From Zancudomyces culisetae HAW-14-8 (Eukaryota; Fungi; Kickxellomycota): a DNA stretch of 64,000 nucleotides. Shown here in pieces: positions 26,767 to 34,978 of the stretch. Position numbers and translations under genes: made by a program. The first letter of the stretch is position 1. Each line of letters opens with the position of its first letter. The stretch covers positions 558,001-622,000 of the forward strand of contig JBNJNM010000008.1 of the NCBI GenBank assembly GCA_052426225.1, written 5' to 3'. The notes below the pieces were generated by a model. The model saw nothing but the letters and a program-made list of their open reading frames with translations, searched no databases and was not told the origin of the DNA.

Positions 26767-27681
26767 ATGCAGTTGAAAAAGATCTTTTCATTTGGGCTCA
26801 AATTGCGTTCACAAGGGCCCAATCTTATAAGAAGTCATACTCTTAGAACAATCCCAAATCTGCCAAGGGAGAAAAATGATCAATTTTACAGACAACAAGC
26901 GCGTGAATATCAATCGAAAACCGGATCTTCAGAGTTGACTACAGAGAAAAATGATAATGAAGCAGCAACGATAAAGCCGAAAAAAAACAAATTAGGTCGA
27001 CCCTCCAAAACGAGTGATGAGCCAGAGAAACAAATTGGGTCAGAATCAAATAGCTTTCTCTTTTTGAGAGCCTCTCTCGATCTCCCGACCAAAAAAGGTG
27101 ACATTACGATTGATAGAAAAATGATAAAAAAAATTCAGGGAACTACGCCCATACTACATGACATACCCAAATTTTATATGAGGCCACAGAATATATTTTT
27201 CATGGAGAATGCGAAAAAAATCAAGGGGGAAAAAGTATGCTTGAGTAGTTTAATTGAGGGATACAAAGCTTTGAGTGAGGAAGAAAAAAACGTATACAAG
27301 GAGAAGGCGCAAAAATTAAGGGAGGAAAGATATCAAGAGTATATTGAATGGTGGAAAAATACAGATAAAACGATGATATCTTTTGAAAACAAAAGACGAA
27401 AGATAATGCGAATAAAAAAGACCAACAGACCTGGGTATAGTCTGCGCTTGAAAAACCCTCTAGTACCAAAAAGGGTCCCTAACCCTTACGCAATGTATTT
27501 ACAAGAAAGGCTGAAGTTGAGGCCTGTTTTAAATTCTCGCGAAGAGTACTTACAATCGATCAGTATTATTTCAAAGGATTGGAGAGAATTACCTGATGCC
27601 GAAAAGCAAAAATATATAGATATCTATCGAGAAAAGTCAGAGGAGAGAGCCAAACTACTTGAAAAAAAAGTATCTGGGTAG
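26767..27681 (+). CDS. Two-HMG-box protein, probably mitochondrial (Abf2/TFAM-like)
   Basis: Basic presequence-like N-terminus. Box 1 is degenerate ('YKALSEEEKNVYKEKA'); box 2 reads 'PKRVPNPYAMYL...WRELPDAEKQKY'. Confidence 0.75.
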   Translation: MQLKKIFSFGLKLRSQGPNLIRSHTLRTIPNLPREKNDQFYRQQAREYQSKTGSSELTTEKNDNEAATIKPKKNKLGRPSKTSDEPEKQIGSESNSFLFLRASLDLPTKKGDITIDRKMIKKIQGTTPILHDIPKFYMRPQNIFFMENAKKIKGEKVCLSSLIEGYKALSEEEKNVYKEKAQKLREERYQEYIEWWKNTDKTMISFENKRRKIMRIKKTNRPGYSLRLKNPLVPKRVPNPYAMYLQERLKLRPVLNSREEYLQSISIISKDWRELPDAEKQKYIDIYREKSEERAKLLEKKVSG

Positions 27682-28390
27682 TAAGTTGTGATTGTAAATG
27701 TTTTTGTGCAATCTTATCCTTGATTCTTGGCAAATTTGGACAGTAAATATGCTATTTTTCCAACAATGATTTTATTTATCCCTAAGAATGTGTAGGTGTT
27801 ATTTTCGGGTATACCCGGATGCCTTAACTCGGCAAGTTTTATTTAATATATTTGTAGATGAATGCGCCAAACAAAAAATAAAGTTGTTGTATTCTTATCA
27901 TTATTGACATGTTTAATTTTTTTTATCGCGCGAAAGTGTTAACCCCTATATATCATAATATAAACTCAAGTGTGTGCTGAATCCCATGTTTGTTGCTTGA
28001 ACCTTTATATTATATATATGAAAAAAAGTAAAATGAAAGAAATAAAAGATCTGTTCACAAATGTGTCAGTTTAAAGAATAACCACATTGTTTTTGTTGTG
28101 GAGATCGAAAATGCGGATGAAGTAGTTGGTTCAGATTAGGGTTAAAATTGGAGAGTTGTTGATTAATGTTTGTGTCGGTGCTGCTGGTTGGTTGAGACTG
28201 GAAAAAAGAAACCAAGAAAGCAAAGTAAACAAATTCCCAGATTTTTCATCCACCTCCTTAGCATGGAAATAAAATGATGCAAAACGAATAATAGGATTTG
28301 GAATATCCATTCACACTCCGTACACACACACACACACTTAAATACACATATATTGAACTAAACCACGCAGAGAGGGATGAGGAGGATAAA

Positions 28391-31300
28391 ATGAACGGGA
28401 TGAAAAAAATGTACAGGATAGTATTGTGGACTGTAGCCATCTATTTAGGGGCGAGAATACTACCACGGCTGCTGGGAGTACCACCGTGGGCCCCGCAGTT
28501 TGGCCAACTATCAGCACCAAGTGCAAGAGATGTAAAACGAACGTGGAGCACTCCAGACAAATTGGTTTTACATATAGTTCCACACTCACATTGTGATTTG
28601 GGATGGAATCTAAGTATAGACGAATATTACGCCCAGACGGTCAAATACATACTGCGGAGCGTGGTTACAGCGCTGTATAAAGAAAAAAGTCGAAAATTTA
28701 TGTGGGGAGATACGGCGTACTTAGAGCTATGGCTTGAAGATGAGGGACACAAAATAAGCGAAGTTGATGCATTGGAGACGGACGGGAAAAAAGTAACATG
28801 GAGGGAAATGCTGGATGAAATAATCAAGCGGAAGCAATTTGAGCTTACAGGATTCTCATACTCTAGCATGGACGAATTTCTGACTAGTTTATATGGGCAG
28901 TATCAGGATTTTGACGTGGGGAGAGAATACCTGGCCAAGGAATTTAAATCCAAGGCTAAAGTAGCATGGTACGTCGATAACTTTGGACACAAACATACAA
29001 CACCATATGTGTTAAAGACAAACGGATTTCAGAGTATGGTTCTCGGACGAATGTCATATAGACAGCTACAAAAAATGAAGGCAAATAGCGGATTACAATT
29101 CATGTGGGATAGTGGGATCAATAACACTGAAATATATACGCATTTCCTATCCAACCAATACGAATGGCCAAGCTGGAAGTTTGATTTTGATCGACACGAC
29201 AGCTGTAACATTGGAGAACTTCTTGGGATTCTAGCTCGTTTTGCGAACAAGCAAGTCGGGATATATCCTCATAAAAAGCAAATATTGATAATAATGGGGG
29301 ATGATTTTCGATTTGTCAAGGCAGAAAAAGCGTTTAACTGCCTGGATACACTGGTACGTGCAGCGGGCAGTGGAAAGTATAGAAACTGGGGGCAAGGAAA
29401 GAAACAGCTTGAGCTGAGATATTCAACAATAAGCGAATATATGCAATCATTACAAGAAGACAAATCCGTTCAGTTGGGAAGTGTAAAGGGTGATTTTGGT
29501 CCCTACAATGATAGGAGACCCGAGAACTATTGGACAGGGATATATTCGACCAGACCAGCACTAAAATATTCCATCAGATATACAGAAAGACTTGTGAAAC
29601 AGGCTGAATCGGTATTTGCGTTGGCAAAGCTTTTTGCAAGAAAAAGTGTTTCCAATAGTGGCGAAAATCTTGACGGTATAGCTCTAAATAGTACAGTAAT
29701 AACTCTGCTGGAAGGTAAATTAACAGATAGTCAAAAACAATTGTCGCTTGGATATCATCATGACTCAATAACAGGAGTGTGTACAGCCCAGACGTATAAG
29801 AATTACATGAGTCGTCTGCAGGAAGCAAATAAAAAATCTAGAGAAATAATCAGTACATGTATGAGAGCAGTATTAAACTCTAAAGAGGCAGCTAAGGGAG
29901 GTGGTGATATAGAGTACGTGGGTCCATCTATTGGAACGGTTTATGGTGCCGAATCAGTTGAAGATGAAGTGGAAACGCAGATAGAACAGCATGGATCCGC
30001 TTATATAGATAGCACACGATGTAACAATGTAAAATGCAAAGATGTGTTATTGGCTGTTGTAAACTCGGCATCGCTCTATCCGCAAAACCGACTGGTGACT
30101 TTAGTACTGTTTACCAAAGACATTGAGATAAAGGATGTTAAAAAAGATTCTGTTGTAGCTCTGCAAATTGAAACTATAGATGAAGTAAATAACAAGTATA
30201 GGATAAGTTTTATAGCAGAATCGATTCCGCAATTGAGCTACAAGACATATTTGCTGTACAAAAAGACACCGGAACTGGAACCGAAGGCGAGTGATGGTAC
30301 CGATACCAGTATCAATAAAGTCAACACATTTGTGGAACACGTCAAGTTGACTAAACACAATACTGTGAGTCTTGATGCCAAACTCAGCAACAAAGAAGTG
30401 AAGAATAAAGACAATATGGGTTTAAAAATAGAATATGCGAAAGGAGTGATAAAGATAATAACACCCGAAAAGAAGGAGTATTTTATTGAAATGCGGCACT
30501 ACTTTGTTAGTAAGTTTAGAGGTTCAGGAGCCTATTTGTTTCATTCATTGTTTCAAATGTACTTTTTGTTGTTTTTTTACATTTTTGTCGGGATTGGGGG
30601 CGGGCTGGCTCTGTGTTTATACATGACTAGCACTAGAAAGAAAAGGAAGTTTAGTCAAACACTACTGGCAAATCCAAATATCTATGATAAAGATCTGCCC
30701 GTGGTAGATGGTAGTGAAAAGGACATGGAGGCAAGATCGAAACAGAAGGAAAAACCAAGTATTTCCATAAATATGGAGGGCGAAAATAGTCGGTATTTGG
30801 AAAAGGCGCTGATAGAGCTATACGAGCGTCTGGCTAGTGTGACTATAGGTGCAATGTTAGGAGGTGTGCTTACGCTTATGGTTCTACAAGCGATACCCGA
30901 AAGTATAATTGCTCGATGGACAAACAATGAGATGGTATTACCGCTTTTACTGGTAATGGTGATCATGGGATACGTTCTTGGTCACTTTTTTGCTTATAGG
31001 GCAAGAAGCTTGAAAATTACAATCAAAAACTCGCTCAATAGCATAATAATAACATACATTATGTTGGGTGTTGCGTTGGGGATGTATTACATACTGCTTA
31101 ATTACCCAACCCTGCACAGCCGTCGAGATTACCCCATTTCCCCAATTGTCAAGGTAGTAACGGGGCCATTAATGTCCTCGATAAGTCTGTACTACGAGTC
31201 TGCAAAGGTGAAAATCATCCAATCGAAGCATTTAGATGGAGATATTAGAATTCTCACTACAATAATCGGGAAGCGGAAAAATATAGAAAGTCTATTGTGG

Positions 31301-32143
31301 ATATATTCAAATGACAAAAGCCAAAACAAGTACTATCAGCTTGATGGGTATAACAACGTAACTTACAATTATTTTACCTGTATTCCAGGAAATTATCAAC
31401 CGATAGTAGATTCAATTTCAAACCTGCCATCAGAAACAGCATCATTGAAGCATGGCGGTGTACAAATTAAGGTTACGCAGCCAATTGGCGGAACATTACT
31501 CAAGAATAAGTACTTTGAGTTTTTGCTATTTAGGAGGTTTAAGCAGGATGACTATAGGGGACTCTGGGGGATTCTAGCTGATAAATCCAAGGTGTCGATA
31601 TCACACTATATCAAAAACCAGAATAGCAACTTTGACCCGAATATTCCCGTTCATGTTATTCCCTTCGAATACAGAAACACTGCCGATAACAAAGTAAGTG
31701 GAGTTTCCAACAAAGCTCTGGAAAATGACACTCTACTTGATCTTTCTTCAGCTCTGGATCCCACAATAAGTTCAACCATCATGGGCGAAGGTAGTATTCC
31801 CACAGGAATCGATATTATTGGGATCAGGTTGCTCCGGAATCCCTATACGTCCACCGTTTCAGCCGAATTTCCGCTTTCCTCTTCTCATTTATATGTGAGG
31901 TTTTCTACATTTGGGTTGAAGTCATATACAAAAATACGCCTGTACAGGCACAAAAGTGGACAAAAGCCTATTGGCGCTGTCTACTCGGTTACCAATGACT
32001 ATGGACTTTTCAATTCCAATCATGGCGGGAGCGACATTACGCGTAAAGAAGAAATATCTATTTCTCTCACTGATGGACAATATTACGAGCTGAATTTTGA
32101 GCCTAACACTGTTTCTCTTTACCATTTTGTACTAGAGGAATAA
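28391..32143 (+). CDS. GH38 alpha-mannosidase with N-terminal signal anchor and internal 4-TM insertion
   Basis: First ATG at 28391. Motifs HIVPHSHCDLGW, WYVDNFGH (nucleophile), MGDDF (acid/base), YWTGIYSTRP, HHDSITG, SGAYLF, PGNYQP and RRFKQDDYRGL. Confidence 0.9.
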   Translation: MNGMKKMYRIVLWTVAIYLGARILPRLLGVPPWAPQFGQLSAPSARDVKRTWSTPDKLVLHIVPHSHCDLGWNLSIDEYYAQTVKYILRSVVTALYKEKSRKFMWGDTAYLELWLEDEGHKISEVDALETDGKKVTWREMLDEIIKRKQFELTGFSYSSMDEFLTSLYGQYQDFDVGREYLAKEFKSKAKVAWYVDNFGHKHTTPYVLKTNGFQSMVLGRMSYRQLQKMKANSGLQFMWDSGINNTEIYTHFLSNQYEWPSWKFDFDRHDSCNIGELLGILARFANKQVGIYPHKKQILIIMGDDFRFVKAEKAFNCLDTLVRAAGSGKYRNWGQGKKQLELRYSTISEYMQSLQEDKSVQLGSVKGDFGPYNDRRPENYWTGIYSTRPALKYSIRYTERLVKQAESVFALAKLFARKSVSNSGENLDGIALNSTVITLLEGKLTDSQKQLSLGYHHDSITGVCTAQTYKNYMSRLQEANKKSREIISTCMRAVLNSKEAAKGGGDIEYVGPSIGTVYGAESVEDEVETQIEQHGSAYIDSTRCNNVKCKDVLLAVVNSASLYPQNRLVTLVLFTKDIEIKDVKKDSVVALQIETIDEVNNKYRISFIAESIPQLSYKTYLLYKKTPELEPKASDGTDTSINKVNTFVEHVKLTKHNTVSLDAKLSNKEVKNKDNMGLKIEYAKGVIKIITPEKKEYFIEMRHYFVSKFRGSGAYLFHSLFQMYFLLFFYIFVGIGGGLALCLYMTSTRKKRKFSQTLLANPNIYDKDLPVVDGSEKDMEARSKQKEKPSISINMEGENSRYLEKALIELYERLASVTIGAMLGGVLTLMVLQAIPESIIARWTNNEMVLPLLLVMVIMGYVLGHFFAYRARSLKITIKNSLNSIIITYIMLGVALGMYYILLNYPTLHSRRDYPISPIVKVVTGPLMSSISLYYESAKVKIIQSKHLDGDIRILTTIIGKRKNIESLLWIYSNDKSQNKYYQLDGYNNVTYNYFTCIPGNYQPIVDSISNLPSETASLKHGGVQIKVTQPIGGTLLKNKYFEFLLFRRFKQDDYRGLWGILADKSKVSISHYIKNQNSNFDPNIPVHVIPFEYRNTADNKVSGVSNKALENDTLLDLSSALDPTISSTIMGEGSIPTGIDIIGIRLLRNPYTSTVSAEFPLSSSHLYVRFSTFGLKSYTKIRLYRHKSGQKPIGAVYSVTNDYGLFNSNHGGSDITRKEEISISLTDGQYYELNFEPNTVSLYHFVLEE

Positions 32144-32779
32144 TTTTTTACATATTTGCCTTTTTATTTATTTTTTCTGTGTGTGTATGTATGTATGTAC
32201 TTGAGCATATATTAATTTGTGACAATTTACTTTTTATATCGACTAACGAGGTTCTGATTCAGCATTAGGTTTTTGTGTTATAAAAGCAACAAAAAGAGAC
32301 ATATCATGTTTTGGTTTAAATATTAATGAATCAGTTGTAAACCTTGTAACACTCGCTTTCTTGGCGTGTCTTTATTAGCCCGTTTTTATAAAACAAATGG
32401 CATTTATTAACACTATAGTAAAACCTAATGCTTAACCTAAATCTGTGCATAAAATTGGGTTCAAATTGAATAATAATGGGCTTGGAAAAATGTAAAGTAA
32501 AATCCTAATAACACTGGGAGAAAAGACTGCAAAACATACTTGCAAATCACCAAAGCTTAACAAAAAAGTAGAATAAAATAAATAAATAAATAGCTATAGG
32601 TCAATGTGAGCTAGAAAACAATGAAATTGAAACTGGGCATTTTTGAGATATTTCAACTTTATTCAAGCTTTCAAAAGCCCTTTTGTATTACTTCTAGATT
32701 TAGTGAAATTTGTATTTGAAACGTATAGCTGAAGAGCAATAAAATAAAGTAAAAAAAAAACGAGCCAAGGTTGATAACA

Positions 32780-34978
32780 ATGTTTGGGGATCAATATGAC
32801 GATATCATAGATCCATTTGCAGAGGATAGAACCTCTCCATGGGTCAGAAAAGTCGATGAAGCCACCCAAGCCAAAAGCAGAGATGAACAGATTGATTTTA
32901 TGGGCAACAGACTCCAACGTGATTTGCATATCTATGACGAGTATGAACACACACAGAATGAAGAACGCGCTGAAATAGAGAATATGAAGGACTCTTTTGA
33001 CGGCATCGAAACTGAATCTGGTAAACACATTTCTAAAACAAATGAAACAAATGAACTGGAGTCTGATTTTGAAACAGAAAGTGCTGGAGACGATATTAGT
33101 AAAGTAGATACTGAAAACTTGGAACAAACCCAGGGAAATGTGAAGCAAAACCAGAACGGAGAGGAACAAGGGCAAGAGAAAACAACAGCCAAGAAAAAGA
33201 AGAAGAAGGGAAAGGGAAAAGGAAAAGGAAAAGGAGACGAGAGCGAAAACGAGAACGAACAGGAGCAAAAATCAGTTTCTGCGAGTGAAAAGGCTGGTTC
33301 AAAACCTATAGAGACAGAAAAGAAGAAAAAGGTAATATCCGAGGTACATCGGGTACGGAGAGTAAGACAGGCAAAGGTGATATTTAGTGAAAACAAGAAC
33401 CAGGATACCACAGCCAACAGCATTGGTCAACAGCAATTAACGGAAGGTAGTAATGGTATTGAAGGAAACGATATGGATACCGCAAAGGGTGAAGAATTCG
33501 TCGACCCATTAAGCAACCCCACGAGGGCTGATGGCCACAATGCCGTTGATAATAAAGAGATAGTAGAAACCGAAAGCACTGGTTACTACATACCTAAAAC
33601 GCAGGTCAGTGCTCAAGAGTCTCTAGTTGTTGAAAATGGTCGGTTAGTGCCTGATGGCGAAGATGCAGTTATCAGGCTAGACAGGCGGGATATTAGTGGT
33701 GCAGAGGAGCAGCTGCAGGAAGACCAAATTAACTATTTGGAAATATGTAAGGATCTGAAGATAAGTGTTTCTGAACCAATCAAAGTTGGCGATACCCTCA
33801 GCGCACACACAGTTTACAAAGTAAGCACCATTCAAACGAACGACTCGGCCATGTCTGGAGCACAAGAAATCGTAGTACGAAGGAGGTATAGAGATTTTGA
33901 ATGGTTATACCAGCAACTGAGCCAAGAATGTAATGGGATCTTTATTCCGGCAATTCCAGAGAAGCAATCATTTGGGAGGTTCGAGACAGAGTTTATTTCC
34001 AAACGAAGAAAGGGACTGGAAAGGTTTCTTATTAGAATATCACAACATCCGGTTTTAAAAAGCCAAGAGTCGTTTGAAGTGTTTTTATACAGTGACAACT
34101 TTTACAATGAAGCTAAATCAATAGAAGAAAATAGAAAAAAAAAGAAGAGAGATAGTGAAAGTGTTAGTAGTAATCCAGTCCCGGAAACAGGAGGAGGGTT
34201 GGGATTTCTGAACTATCTGATAGGTAAAAATTCAATTATAGGAATTGGTGGTGGTGGTGGTGGAGGGAGTGCAAGTGGAATTGGAGGAGGTGGAAGCGAC
34301 AGTCTTGGGGTTGGAGCAGGAGATCTCAGCATAAGCAGGCTTTTGATTGATAAAAACGATGAGTTTAGTGATAAAATTAGTGAGCTTGAGGTTTTGGAAG
34401 CACAGCTTAAAACAATAACCAAAATAGTCACCAACATTGGAAGACACAAAGACGAACTATCACATTGCTACTCGGCGCTAGCAGAAAGCTACATTCAGCT
34501 GGCTGGTGCAGAAAGTGGTGGAGGAAGTACAAAGACGGTAGATTTGGCTGAGGCGTTGGTGGAACTAGGAACAATGCATAAGCGACTGGACGTGCTCCAG
34601 CAGCAACAAAACTCACTGATCCAAGATAACTTTGGTACAACAATCGATGAGTACCGTCGGTTTATAGCCAGCATAAAAGTACGCTTCGCAGAGCGAGTAA
34701 AACTGTATTCTAGGTACAAATCCAATTCTGATAGTTTAGCTGAGCTAAAAATGGGTAGCCGACAATCAGCCAGTATATCTGCACTGGAACTGACCACCGA
34801 ACAAAGCCTATCTGCATTTGAGCAATACAATGCAACACTCAGGCAGGAACTAGATAGGTTTGAATCCATCAAAGTAGCCGAGTTTCTTACTCTTACCGAA
34901 GACTTTCTTGCAAAAAGCGTAGACATCCAGGACGAGATAGTTGGGCTTTGGGATCAGTTTGTCAGCCGTCAGCTTTGA
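32780..34978 (+). CDS. VPS5: Sorting nexin Vps5/SNX1-2 (PX + BAR), retromer
   Basis: ATG at 32780. PX domain 'VSEPIKVGD...HTVYKV', 'VRRRYRDFEWL', 'IPAIPEKQ..GRF...FI..RR..LE.FL..I..HP.L', followed by a BAR-like helical C-terminus ending 'LWDQF'. Confidence 0.85.
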   Translation: MFGDQYDDIIDPFAEDRTSPWVRKVDEATQAKSRDEQIDFMGNRLQRDLHIYDEYEHTQNEERAEIENMKDSFDGIETESGKHISKTNETNELESDFETESAGDDISKVDTENLEQTQGNVKQNQNGEEQGQEKTTAKKKKKKGKGKGKGKGDESENENEQEQKSVSASEKAGSKPIETEKKKKVISEVHRVRRVRQAKVIFSENKNQDTTANSIGQQQLTEGSNGIEGNDMDTAKGEEFVDPLSNPTRADGHNAVDNKEIVETESTGYYIPKTQVSAQESLVVENGRLVPDGEDAVIRLDRRDISGAEEQLQEDQINYLEICKDLKISVSEPIKVGDTLSAHTVYKVSTIQTNDSAMSGAQEIVVRRRYRDFEWLYQQLSQECNGIFIPAIPEKQSFGRFETEFISKRRKGLERFLIRISQHPVLKSQESFEVFLYSDNFYNEAKSIEENRKKKKRDSESVSSNPVPETGGGLGFLNYLIGKNSIIGIGGGGGGGSASGIGGGGSDSLGVGAGDLSISRLLIDKNDEFSDKISELEVLEAQLKTITKIVTNIGRHKDELSHCYSALAESYIQLAGAESGGGSTKTVDLAEALVELGTMHKRLDVLQQQQNSLIQDNFGTTIDEYRRFIASIKVRFAERVKLYSRYKSNSDSLAELKMGSRQSASISALELTTEQSLSAFEQYNATLRQELDRFESIKVAEFLTLTEDFLAKSVDIQDEIVGLWDQFVSRQL

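Follow-up and report, generated by a model that had tools for sequence, protein, structure and literature searches.

In Zancudomyces culisetae, a GH38 alpha-mannosidase is interrupted within its C-terminal beta-domain, directly after the SGAY strand, by about 199 residues that are predicted to form four transmembrane helices, and we read this four-helix insertion as a new architecture within a known enzyme family. Our preferred explanation, to which we would give a probability of roughly 0.7 as a whole, is a catalytically competent class II enzyme held at a membrane by an N-terminal signal-anchor and by a lineage-specific helical bundle of single origin, which acts as a clamp and is threaded through the bilayer in such a way that both halves of the enzyme lie on its lumenal side. 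Multi-pass modules within a folded lumenal beta-domain are rare and, to our knowledge, unrecorded for GH38 and for glycoside hydrolases generally. Our literature search likewise gave no paper describing a four-helix insertion in a GH38 enzyme, which agrees with an earlier reading of the same DNA, made from its letters only (the sequence-only reading), that had held the architecture to be undescribed.

A class II alpha-mannosidase with a divided C-terminal domain

The open reading frame spans 28298-32143 on the + strand of the window, i.e. of the whole 64,000-nucleotide stretch of DNA that was analysed and to which all positions refer. Translation probably begins with the ATG at 28391, and the alignment with the orthologues sets in at this methionine. 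The gene is divided as follows:

28391..32143, + strand: GH38 alpha-mannosidase coding sequence, complete and intron-less, 1250 aa plus stop (open reading frame list, full-length orthologue alignment)
28418..28474, + strand: N-terminal hydrophobic segment (aa 10-28), following K5, K6 and R9; Kyte-Doolittle mean 1.61
28568..29476, + strand: GH38 N-terminal catalytic domain (aa 60-362); Pfam PF01074, E 3e-39
29525..29869, + strand: alpha-mannosidase middle domain (aa 379-493), containing HHD; Pfam PF09261, E 3.4e-13
30524..30541, + strand: SGAYLF motif (aa 712-717); G713, A714 and Y715 invariant
30542..31138, + strand: lineage-specific insert (aa 718-916), about 199 residues with four predicted transmembrane helices, without counterpart in outgroup GH38 proteins
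31139..32140, + strand: resumed GH38 C-terminal beta-domains (aa 917-1250), containing PGNYQP and RRFKQDDYRGL (phmmer, AlphaFold beta-strands, Foldseek)

The protein is a class II GH38 alpha-mannosidase, whose closest relatives of solved structure are Drosophila GMII, followed by the jack-bean mannosidase. Its catalytic domain carries HSHCD with Zn ligands, DNFGH with the nucleophile D196 and GDDF with the acid/base D305, and the HHD of the middle domain corresponds to H456, H457 and D458, of which H457 is a Zn ligand. The residues H65/H67/D69, D196, D305 and H456/H457/D458 are invariant across the alignment, and the earlier statement that all catalytic and Zn residues are retained is thus borne out. 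The residue register was tied to Drosophila GMII (nucleophile D204) via alignment to PDB sequences and identifies H67, D69, D196 and H457, all of them invariant, as the Zn ligands; in GMII numbering the nucleophile is D204, the acid/base D341 and the Zn ligands are His90/Asp92/Asp204/His471 (PMC13204073 and established literature). Judged by these intact residues, the enzyme is probably catalytically competent.

The sequence-only reading had expected HMMER to recover three GH38 domains, the last of them split. This expectation held for the catalytic domain (135.5 bits against a cut-off of 25) and the middle domain (49.9 bits against 31.1), but Pfam GH38C stayed undetected in the whole protein and in each of the two halves with the threshold relaxed to E <= 10; the division of the C-terminal domain is instead indicated by alignment to PDB sequences and by the match of the whole model to the GMII fold. 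GH38 sequence restarts with SPIVKVVTGPL (aa 917-927), placed by alignment at residues ~742-752 of Drosophila GMII; in the phmmer search of PDB sequences aa 917-1100 align to positions 730-907 of the GMII chain, and the AlphaFold model of the whole protein matches GMII (TM-score 0.71-0.74, normalised to the target). When PDB sequences were searched with a 52-aa peptide from around SGAY, nothing matched.

The N-terminal segment is followed by a stem of ~30 aa ahead of the first catalytic-domain strand and may serve as a signal-anchor, though a signal peptide is also possible. It is without small residues at -3/-1 and would therefore probably stay uncleaved; on the other hand, its moderate hydrophobicity and the two Arg within it leave room for a signal peptide that is cleaved. 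In the orthologues the corresponding segment reaches Kyte-Doolittle values of 1.85-2.1.

Among solved structures, Drosophila GMII (PDB 1HTY/6RPC; EC 3.2.1.114) is the best match in both sequence and fold. It shares with the Zancudomyces protein the three-domain GH38 organisation, the Zn ligands, the nucleophile, the acid/base, the Tyr727 equivalent and an N-terminal hydrophobic anchor of the lumen-placing kind. However, GMII is single-pass and has ~15 residues from Tyr727 to the next strand, where the Zancudomyces protein has ~200 residues and four helices; the latter also differs in its short stem and undetectable GH38C, and structure-based identity is only ~16%. Bovine LAM (1O7D) and the jack-bean enzyme (6B9O), the second-best matches, share the SGAY(I/L)F...GPL arrangement within their C-terminal domain, but lysosomal and plant class II GH38 enzymes are soluble, without a membrane segment and with a short SGAY-to-GPL loop. 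A paralogue in the same genome (G000:C7, ~430.2-433.4 kb), an alpha-mannosidase of the vacuolar/cytosolic Ams1 type, is a further member of this CAZy family, and its gene is likewise an intron-less open reading frame. In contrast to the insert-bearing protein, to which it is a distant fold match (TM-score ~0.5), its GH38C, GH38C2 and Ams1-like jelly-roll domains are intact and contiguous, with no separate Pfam family reported between them.

Coding status of the insert

Measured from the serine of SGAY to the position immediately following the glycine of GPL, the Zancudomyces protein has 216 aa, compared with 30 aa in outgroup GH38 proteins. The sequence-only reading had described a four-helix module of about 200 aa following SGAYLF, encoded with neither stop nor intron, and this description stands: four hydrophobic 19-mers lie within ~199 residues, GH38 sequence resumes after them, and the whole is one open reading frame. 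The insert contains no stop in frame 0, against 15 and 13 in the other two frames, and not one of 20000 shuffles was stop-free. Its GC content (~0.40) equals that of the remaining coding sequence, whereas flanking intergenic DNA has 0.30, and its codon usage fits frame 0 best. Single uninterrupted open reading frames containing the insert are found in Smittium culicis, Linderina pennispora and four Coemansia; in four Coemansia genes dN/dS is 0.15-0.22 within the insert versus 0.09-0.12 elsewhere, at equal dS. Judged from sequence, the insert is genuine coding sequence, conserved, hydrophobic and helical.

By the register of the alignments, Y715 is the equivalent of Tyr727 of Drosophila GMII, an active-site residue that hydrogen-bonds the substrate mannose (PMC13204073), which means that the first helix begins ~5 residues past a residue of the active site.

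Distribution and origin

The insert is present, in frame, in 34 of 34 distinct orthologue sequences, which come from Smittium, Coemansia, Linderina, Martensiomyces, Dipsacomyces and Kickxella. The proteins of Smittium culicis, Linderina pennispora and Coemansia are genuine orthologues that carry the insert at an identical position, although they share only 28-38% identity with the Zancudomyces protein and differ from it in the lengths of loop 1 and loop 3. The look at orthologues that had been proposed earlier thus recovered the same insertion in Kickxellales and Harpellales, and the module is not unique to the Zancudomyces genome.

A profile of the insert, searched against 1.84 billion (1.84e9) representatives, gave 19 matches, all of them Kickxellomycotina GH38 proteins; no free-standing relative was found among these representatives, nor any Pfam family or fold match. 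The best Foldseek hit had E = 3.1, the best VIA fold hit a Z of 5.9, which is under the noise level for helical models, TM-scores against atlas structures were <= 0.37, and an ESM-atlas feature search gave no usable match. The known four-helix membrane families (MARVEL, tetraspanin, claudin, transporter and channel repeats) showed no sequence or fold similarity. Pfam matches to Peptidase_U4 and Cation_efflux, at 16-17 bits against cut-offs of 26-28, were rejected as noise of hydrophobic composition. A word-indexed homologue search with the alignment as query returned only the same Kickxellomycotina set and a few distant proteins, with no insertion-less fungal relatives among them.

In a quick tree the insert-bearing clade is monophyletic (support 100) and the Zancudomyces protein is sister to the Smittium (Harpellales) sequences (support 100); branches are long and the family is fast-evolving. 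Across the sequences recovered, the insertion is common to Kickxellales and Harpellales and appears restricted to Kickxellomycotina, and its origin was probably single: a loop of ~15-20 residues that links the SGAY strand to the beta-strand following it in the C-terminal domain would have been expanded once into the bundle. This would imply that a short surface loop beside an active site can become a stable four-helix membrane bundle, and that the bundle has been under purifying selection since before the split between Harpellales and Kickxellales.

The four helices and their predicted topology

Within the insert we distinguish the following elements:

30563..30619, + strand: TM1 core (aa 725-743); Kyte-Doolittle 2.36, -1.9 kcal/mol
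30620..30829, + strand: loop 1 (aa 744-813), predicted cytosolic, opening with RKKRK (charge, pLDDT, variable length)
30830..30886, + strand: TM2 core (aa 814-832), with a conserved GxxxG (G820, G824); Kyte-Doolittle 2.11, pLDDT 87-93
30887..30934, + strand: loop 2 (aa 833-848), predicted lumenal (charge, fixed length, invariant W843)
30935..30991, + strand: TM3 core (aa 849-867); Kyte-Doolittle 2.25, AlphaFold helix at model residues 799-823
30992..31042, + strand: loop 3 (aa 868-884), predicted cytosolic, basic; 4 K/R, 0 D/E
31043..31099, + strand: TM4 core (aa 885-903), with an invariant Gly; Kyte-Doolittle 2.22, -1.6 kcal/mol, helix at model residues 830-854
31100..31138, + strand: predicted lumenal return linker (aa 904-916), with an (H/Q)SR motif of which S and R are invariant (orthologue alignment)

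The four cores are hydrophobic 19-mers with Kyte-Doolittle means of 2.1-2.4. Their summed biological hydrophobicity, from TM1 to TM4, is approximately -1.9, -0.2, +1.0 and -1.6 kcal/mol, compared with a median of 19.9 over the protein. AlphaFold models them confidently, as four helices of 25-41 residues whose membrane cores have a pLDDT of 79-96 in the whole-protein and insert-only models, the input alignments of which were shallow (19 and 26 sequences). The modelled TM1 helix runs from ~aa 720 to ~aa 760 (model residues 670-710) and would extend into the cytosol; its pLDDT is 79-91 over model residues 671-690, 74 over 691-700 and 44 over 701-710, the cytosolic extension. None of the 34 orthologue sequences has a single K, R, D or E in TM1.

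The RKKRK and the hydrophilic loop reported to follow TM1 were found, and the loop measures 70 aa, with 13 K/R, 11 D/E and a pLDDT < 50; the K/R density given for loop 1 is 0.15 per residue. Loop 1 is the least conserved part, with little sequence conservation and no motif conserved clade-wide. Its orthologues range in length from 10 to 122 aa: many Coemansia have a loop of 10-25 aa, and those of Martensiomyces and Dipsacomyces reach as much as 122 aa. Its short variants and the TM3-TM4 junction are enriched in K/R with D/E nearly absent, the junction of Kickxellales being a short R-rich turn (LRWxxRR pattern). Loop 2 in the orthologues has a fixed length of 14 aa and is net acidic; it forms a short interfacial helix (model residues 787-794) with the invariant W843, and the invariant Q833 stands directly after TM2. 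The invariant residues of the insert are located in the helices or on the predicted lumenal side. Some Coemansia have Ala/Gly-rich versions of TM2 and TM3 whose hydrophobicity is lower (Kyte-Doolittle 1.5-1.75).

Hydropathy, charge bias and the AlphaFold models together point to a likely topology. The host membrane would be one of the secretory pathway or the plasma membrane, with the N-terminal tail in the cytosol; the GH38 N-terminal and middle domains and the opening portion of the beta-domain would lie in the lumen or outside the cell. TM1 would then lead into the cytosol and the variable basic loop 1, TM2 back to the lumen and the short conserved loop 2, TM3 again to the cytosol and the short basic loop 3, and TM4 to the lumen, where the remaining beta-domain would fold. 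Both enzyme halves could in this way fold together on the lumenal side, as the sequence-only reading had argued from the even number of helices; the four helices and the basic predicted cytosolic loops fit that argument.

Alternative explanations

That the helices do not cross the bilayer at all, and instead form a monotopic or re-entrant dip, a hydrophobic lid or an oligomerisation domain of a lumenal enzyme, is unlikely in our opinion. TM3 is marginal at +1.0 kcal/mol, and the weaker TM2 and TM3 of some Coemansia would suit such a structure; yet the modelled helices are long enough to span a bilayer, the hydrophobicity of TM1, TM2 and TM4 is within the range of spontaneous insertion, and the alternating charges fit the positive-inside rule. 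Moreover, a long loop 1 rich in both K/R and D/E would be hard to place lumenally on a dipping hairpin. An insert that is spliced out as an in-frame intron or otherwise left untranslated, so that the mature enzyme would be an ordinary GH38, is almost certainly not the explanation, even though there is a GTAAGT at 30511-30516 and in-frame GT...AG pairs can be found close to the borders: splicing from this GTAAGT would remove the invariant SGAY active-site motif, composition does not explain 199 stop-free codons, GC and codon usage are those of the coding sequence, and invariant residues persist over 34 aligned protein sequences. We rejected this possibility on the coding tests and on dN/dS, dS being normal.

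If the helices do span the membrane, they might do more than hold the enzyme. The sequence-only reading had suggested a glycan sensor, a signalling protein or a mannosidase coupled to transport, in which a lumenal glycan event is relayed via the helices or a sugar passes through them. The length of the cytosolic loop in Zancudomyces, and still more in Martensiomyces and Dipsacomyces, could be taken in this sense, as could the position of the bundle next to an active-site residue and the invariant polar Gln at the end of TM2. However, loop 1 is precisely the part that is much shortened in many Coemansia, poorly modelled and least conserved, and variability on the cytosolic side combined with conservation on the lumenal side argues against a sensor or transporter. 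The module resembles no transporter, channel or receptor in the Pfam (sub-threshold), Foldseek, VIA and atlas comparisons given above, and four helices that are nearly free of polar residues within the membrane would make a poor pore; we therefore consider such a role very unlikely and do not uphold the suggestion. It is also most improbable that the GH38 fold has been kept solely as a mannose-binding domain, a pseudo-enzyme or lectin without hydrolysis. The fast evolution of the family with its long branches, a nucleophile motif that reads DNFGH instead of DPFGH, and the absence from the search results of GnT-I, the maker of the canonical substrate, would agree with a loss of activity, but the nucleophile, the acid/base, the four Zn ligands and the equivalents of Tyr727 and Arg are invariant in the clade, and dN/dS outside the insert is ~0.1.

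Role and substrate

The bundle of the proposed membrane-held enzyme is most likely a rigid clamp that keeps the catalytic domain near the bilayer surface, given that it follows ~5 residues past the active-site Tyr and that the stem has only ~30 residues. To judge by proximity along the chain, the active-site region is probably close to the bilayer as well. It is possible, though doubtful, that the bundle goes beyond anchoring: it might hold the pocket at the bilayer, with conserved residues of the lumenal face helping to deliver a membrane-embedded substrate, so that the enzyme trims mannosides that are lipid-linked or close to the membrane, for instance GPI anchors, mannosylated sphingolipids or dolichol-linked glycans. 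Were this true, it would be the first interfacial, polytopic GH38. The lumenal-face residues named in this proposal are HS..MY before TM1, Q833, W843 and (H/Q)SR after TM4.

Golgi alpha-mannosidase II acts on GlcNAcMan5GlcNAc2, the product of GnT-I. In the 27-Mb, 25-contig Zancudomyces assembly, a six-frame Pfam search for GnT-I (GT13, PF03071) gave no match at E <= 0.01, nor any candidate in its first pass; this search covered the Zancudomyces genome. GH47 mannosidases are present in the Zancudomyces genome. Since a GnT-I gene was not found, the enzyme would not be a canonical Golgi mannosidase II (EC 3.2.1.114). GlcNAcMan5GlcNAc2 should not be formed in this fungus and is probably not the substrate of this enzyme, which more likely acts on untrimmed mannose-rich glycans or on mannosides close to the membrane. 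In place of the type II single-pass topology with a long stem, the protein has one N-terminal and four internal hydrophobic segments and the short stem. The orthologues are annotated as 'Alpha-mannosidase 2/2x' or as 'mannosyl-oligosaccharide 1,3-1,6-alpha-mannosidase activity protein', names given by similarity transfer, and the result of the GnT-I search together with the predicted polytopic nature of these enzymes suggests that the 'alpha-mannosidase 2/2x' labels are probably functionally wrong. Coemansia and Linderina are culturable and would offer a tractable system for relating membrane proximity to glycosidase specificity.

An alpha-mannosidase with a four-helix insert

The best-supported reading of the window protein is a lumenal or extracellular, predicted catalytically competent GH38 alpha-mannosidase with a lineage-specific four-helix insert (aa 718-916, 30542-31138), which would act as a membrane clamp on the enzyme. 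The gene and its surroundings comprise:

28298-32143, plus strand: GH38 open frame, single and uninterrupted
aa 60-362, plus strand: Glyco_hydro_38N (Pfam, E 3e-39)
aa 379-493, plus strand: Alpha-mann_mid (Pfam, E 3.4e-13)
aa 712-717 (30524-30541), plus strand: SGAYLF motif, beyond which the frame continues into four hydrophobic stretches
26767-27681, plus strand: upstream flanking ORF, long and intron-less, encoding a basic 304-aa protein
32771-34978, plus strand: downstream flanking ORF, long and intron-less, encoding a 735-aa protein

The product from the first ATG (28391) has 1250 aa, and its N-terminus is in register with those of the orthologues in the family alignment. Neither flanking ORF has an evident functional tie to the mannosidase. 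Among solved structures the best sequence match is Drosophila Golgi alpha-mannosidase II (GMII; E 4e-34), followed by jack-bean and lysosomal mannosidases, and the AlphaFold model of aa 51-1250 (pLDDT 74.8, pTM 0.82, from a shallow underlying alignment) can be superposed on GMII (target-normalised TM-score 0.71-0.74). The stretch that starts at the S of SGAY and ends just beyond the G of GPL has 216 aa in the window protein versus 30 aa in outgroup GH38s, and GH38 sequence returns at aa 917, which the sequence alignment places at about GMII residue 742. The sequence-only reading had described a GH38 enzyme with a four-transmembrane insert, which is right in every particular; of the domains it named for a Pfam check, the N-terminal and middle ones were detected, but Glyco_hydro_38C had no Pfam match in the window protein.

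Coding capacity, membrane helices and catalytic residues

The insert (597 nt) has no stop in frame 0, whereas the other two frames have 15 and 13, and none of 20000 composition-preserving shuffles was stop-free. Its GC content (~0.40) and codon usage resemble those of the remaining CDS, intergenic DNA having a GC of 0.30. In Smittium culicis, Linderina pennispora and four Coemansia the orthologous gene is likewise one unbroken ORF that includes the insert. A comparison of the four Coemansia genes gives a dN/dS of 0.15-0.22 in the insert versus 0.09-0.12 in the rest of the gene at equal dS, so the insert is under purifying selection as protein. GTAAGT, the consensus fungal 5' splice-site hexamer, is found inside the ORF at 30511-30516, shortly before the SGAY codons. 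Its occurrence there is most probably accidental, because an intron from there would remove the invariant active-site SGAY, and an insert that is merely an unspliced intron is extremely improbable.

Two further explanations are likewise less likely than a clamped, active enzyme. The four hydrophobic stretches (aa 725-743, 814-832, 849-867 and 885-903) have Kyte-Doolittle 19-mer means of 2.1-2.4, and their summed biological hydrophobicities, on approximate scale values, are -1.9, -0.2, +1.0 and -1.6 kcal/mol, with a protein-wide median of 19.9. AlphaFold models four helices as well: in the whole protein these are aa 720-760, 798-834, 849-873 and 880-904, with pLDDT 79-93 in the membrane-core parts and below 50 in loop 1 (TM1-TM2) and in the part of the first helix that extends into the cytosol, and the insert alone reaches pLDDT 81.6 and pTM 0.69, again from a shallow alignment. 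Set beside these values, helices that do not span the membrane seem unlikely. A pseudo-enzyme is even harder to credit: HSHCD, DNFGH, GDDF and HHD are all retained and invariant across the family alignment, and D196, H67/D69 and H457 align in sequence with D204, H90/D92 and H471 of GMII.

Topology and membrane tethering

The four hydrophobic segments occupy identical columns in 34 distinct sequences. Invariant or near-invariant residues are H718, S719, M723 and Y724 ahead of TM1, G738 within it, G820 and G824 (a GxxxG packing motif) in TM2 and Q833 at its end, W843 in loop 2 (TM2-TM3), one Gly in TM4, and S910 and R911 past TM4. Loop 1 is K/R-rich and ranges from 10 to 122 aa among orthologues, the TM3-TM4 junction (loop 3) is K/R-rich and almost devoid of D/E, and loop 2 is of constant length and net acidic. 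The positive-inside rule predicts a cytosolic position for loops 1 and 3 and a lumenal one for loop 2 and the flanks. This charge pattern is consistent with the earlier proposal of lumenal enzyme flanks and a cytosolic loop, and the predicted topology agrees with an N-terminal signal-anchor delivering the catalytic domain to the lumen. Soon after TM1, Kickxellales orthologues carry a loose basic motif, L-R-x-L-R-x-P, and the window and Smittium sequences have N-I-Y/F at the aligned position; either motif could be a lineage-specific sorting signal.

By alignment register, the SGAY Tyr is the counterpart of Drosophila GMII Tyr727, which hydrogen-bonds mannose in the catalytic site (PMC13204073). 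TM1 begins about 5 residues past this Tyr, the chain is back in the beta-domain twelve residues beyond TM4, and the N-terminal stem, which contains a conserved PPWAPQFG, has only about 30 residues. Two predicted attachments thus hold the catalytic domain at the membrane, one of them beside the active site; how the pocket faces the bilayer is inferred from this sequence proximity. The most conserved positions lie in the helices and at the lumenal interface, whereas the cytosolic loop varies freely, which argues against the sensor, signalling or transporter role suggested from the sequence alone. The same pattern is compatible with an enzyme acting at the bilayer surface, with membrane-proximal or lipid-linked mannosides as substrates, a tentative and rather doubtful idea.

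Distribution and origin

In the family alignment the insert is present at the same site in every Kickxellomycotina orthologue, as the sequence-only reading had proposed to check, and absent from Blepharisma and other outgroup GH38s. An insert-only profile searched against 1.84 billion representative proteins matched 19, all GH38 or GH38 fragments, from Smittium, Coemansia, Linderina, Martensiomyces, Dipsacomyces and Kickxella, and found no free-standing homologue. The insert model had no match by Foldseek against PDB (best E 3.1) or in an atlas comparison (TM-scores <=0.37), and its best Z of 5.9 from VIA-align against 48,000 chains falls short of the noise level given for helical models. A quick maximum-likelihood tree, which has long branches, groups the insert-bearing proteins in a single clade (support 100), in which Smittium is sister to the window protein (support 100); this suggests a single gain before Harpellales and Kickxellales diverged. 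One orthologue, P0009 (Coemansia sp. RSA 988, 1522 aa, insert at aa 1098-1236), has N-terminal PPR-repeat domains (PF13041, PF13812, PF23276) in its gene model, and this PPR-GH38 fusion is probably a merged gene prediction.

The literature on GH38, on Kickxellomycotina genera and on transmembrane or polytopic forms yielded no description of this four-transmembrane architecture, neither as a characterised subfamily nor otherwise, and orthologues in public databases carry automatic names only. The architecture thus appears to be new within an already known family.

Genome and pathway context

The 27-Mb, 25-contig assembly of the organism (G000) contains only one other GH38, of Ams1 type:

G000:C7:430225-433362 (locus L003 1225-4362), minus strand: Ams1-type alpha-mannosidase, intron-less, ~1045 aa

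In contrast to the window protein with its undetectable GH38C, this paralogue has contiguous GH38N, middle, intact GH38C, GH38C2 and Ams1-like jelly-roll domains. A six-frame search of the assembly found no GnT-I (PF03071), so that the canonical GMII substrate could not be made; a GMII-like GH38 in such a genome would appear to stand outside the classical pathway to complex N-glycans, and the 'alpha-mannosidase 2/2x' labels of orthologues should not be taken as function. GH47 has three matches in the assembly, two of which (contigs C19, 25012-26448, and C21, 2333703-2335139) score alike (491.2 bits, E 2.0e-146) and have the same 608-aa open frame, and may stem from a recent duplication of the segment or from a duplicate contig left uncollapsed in the assembly.
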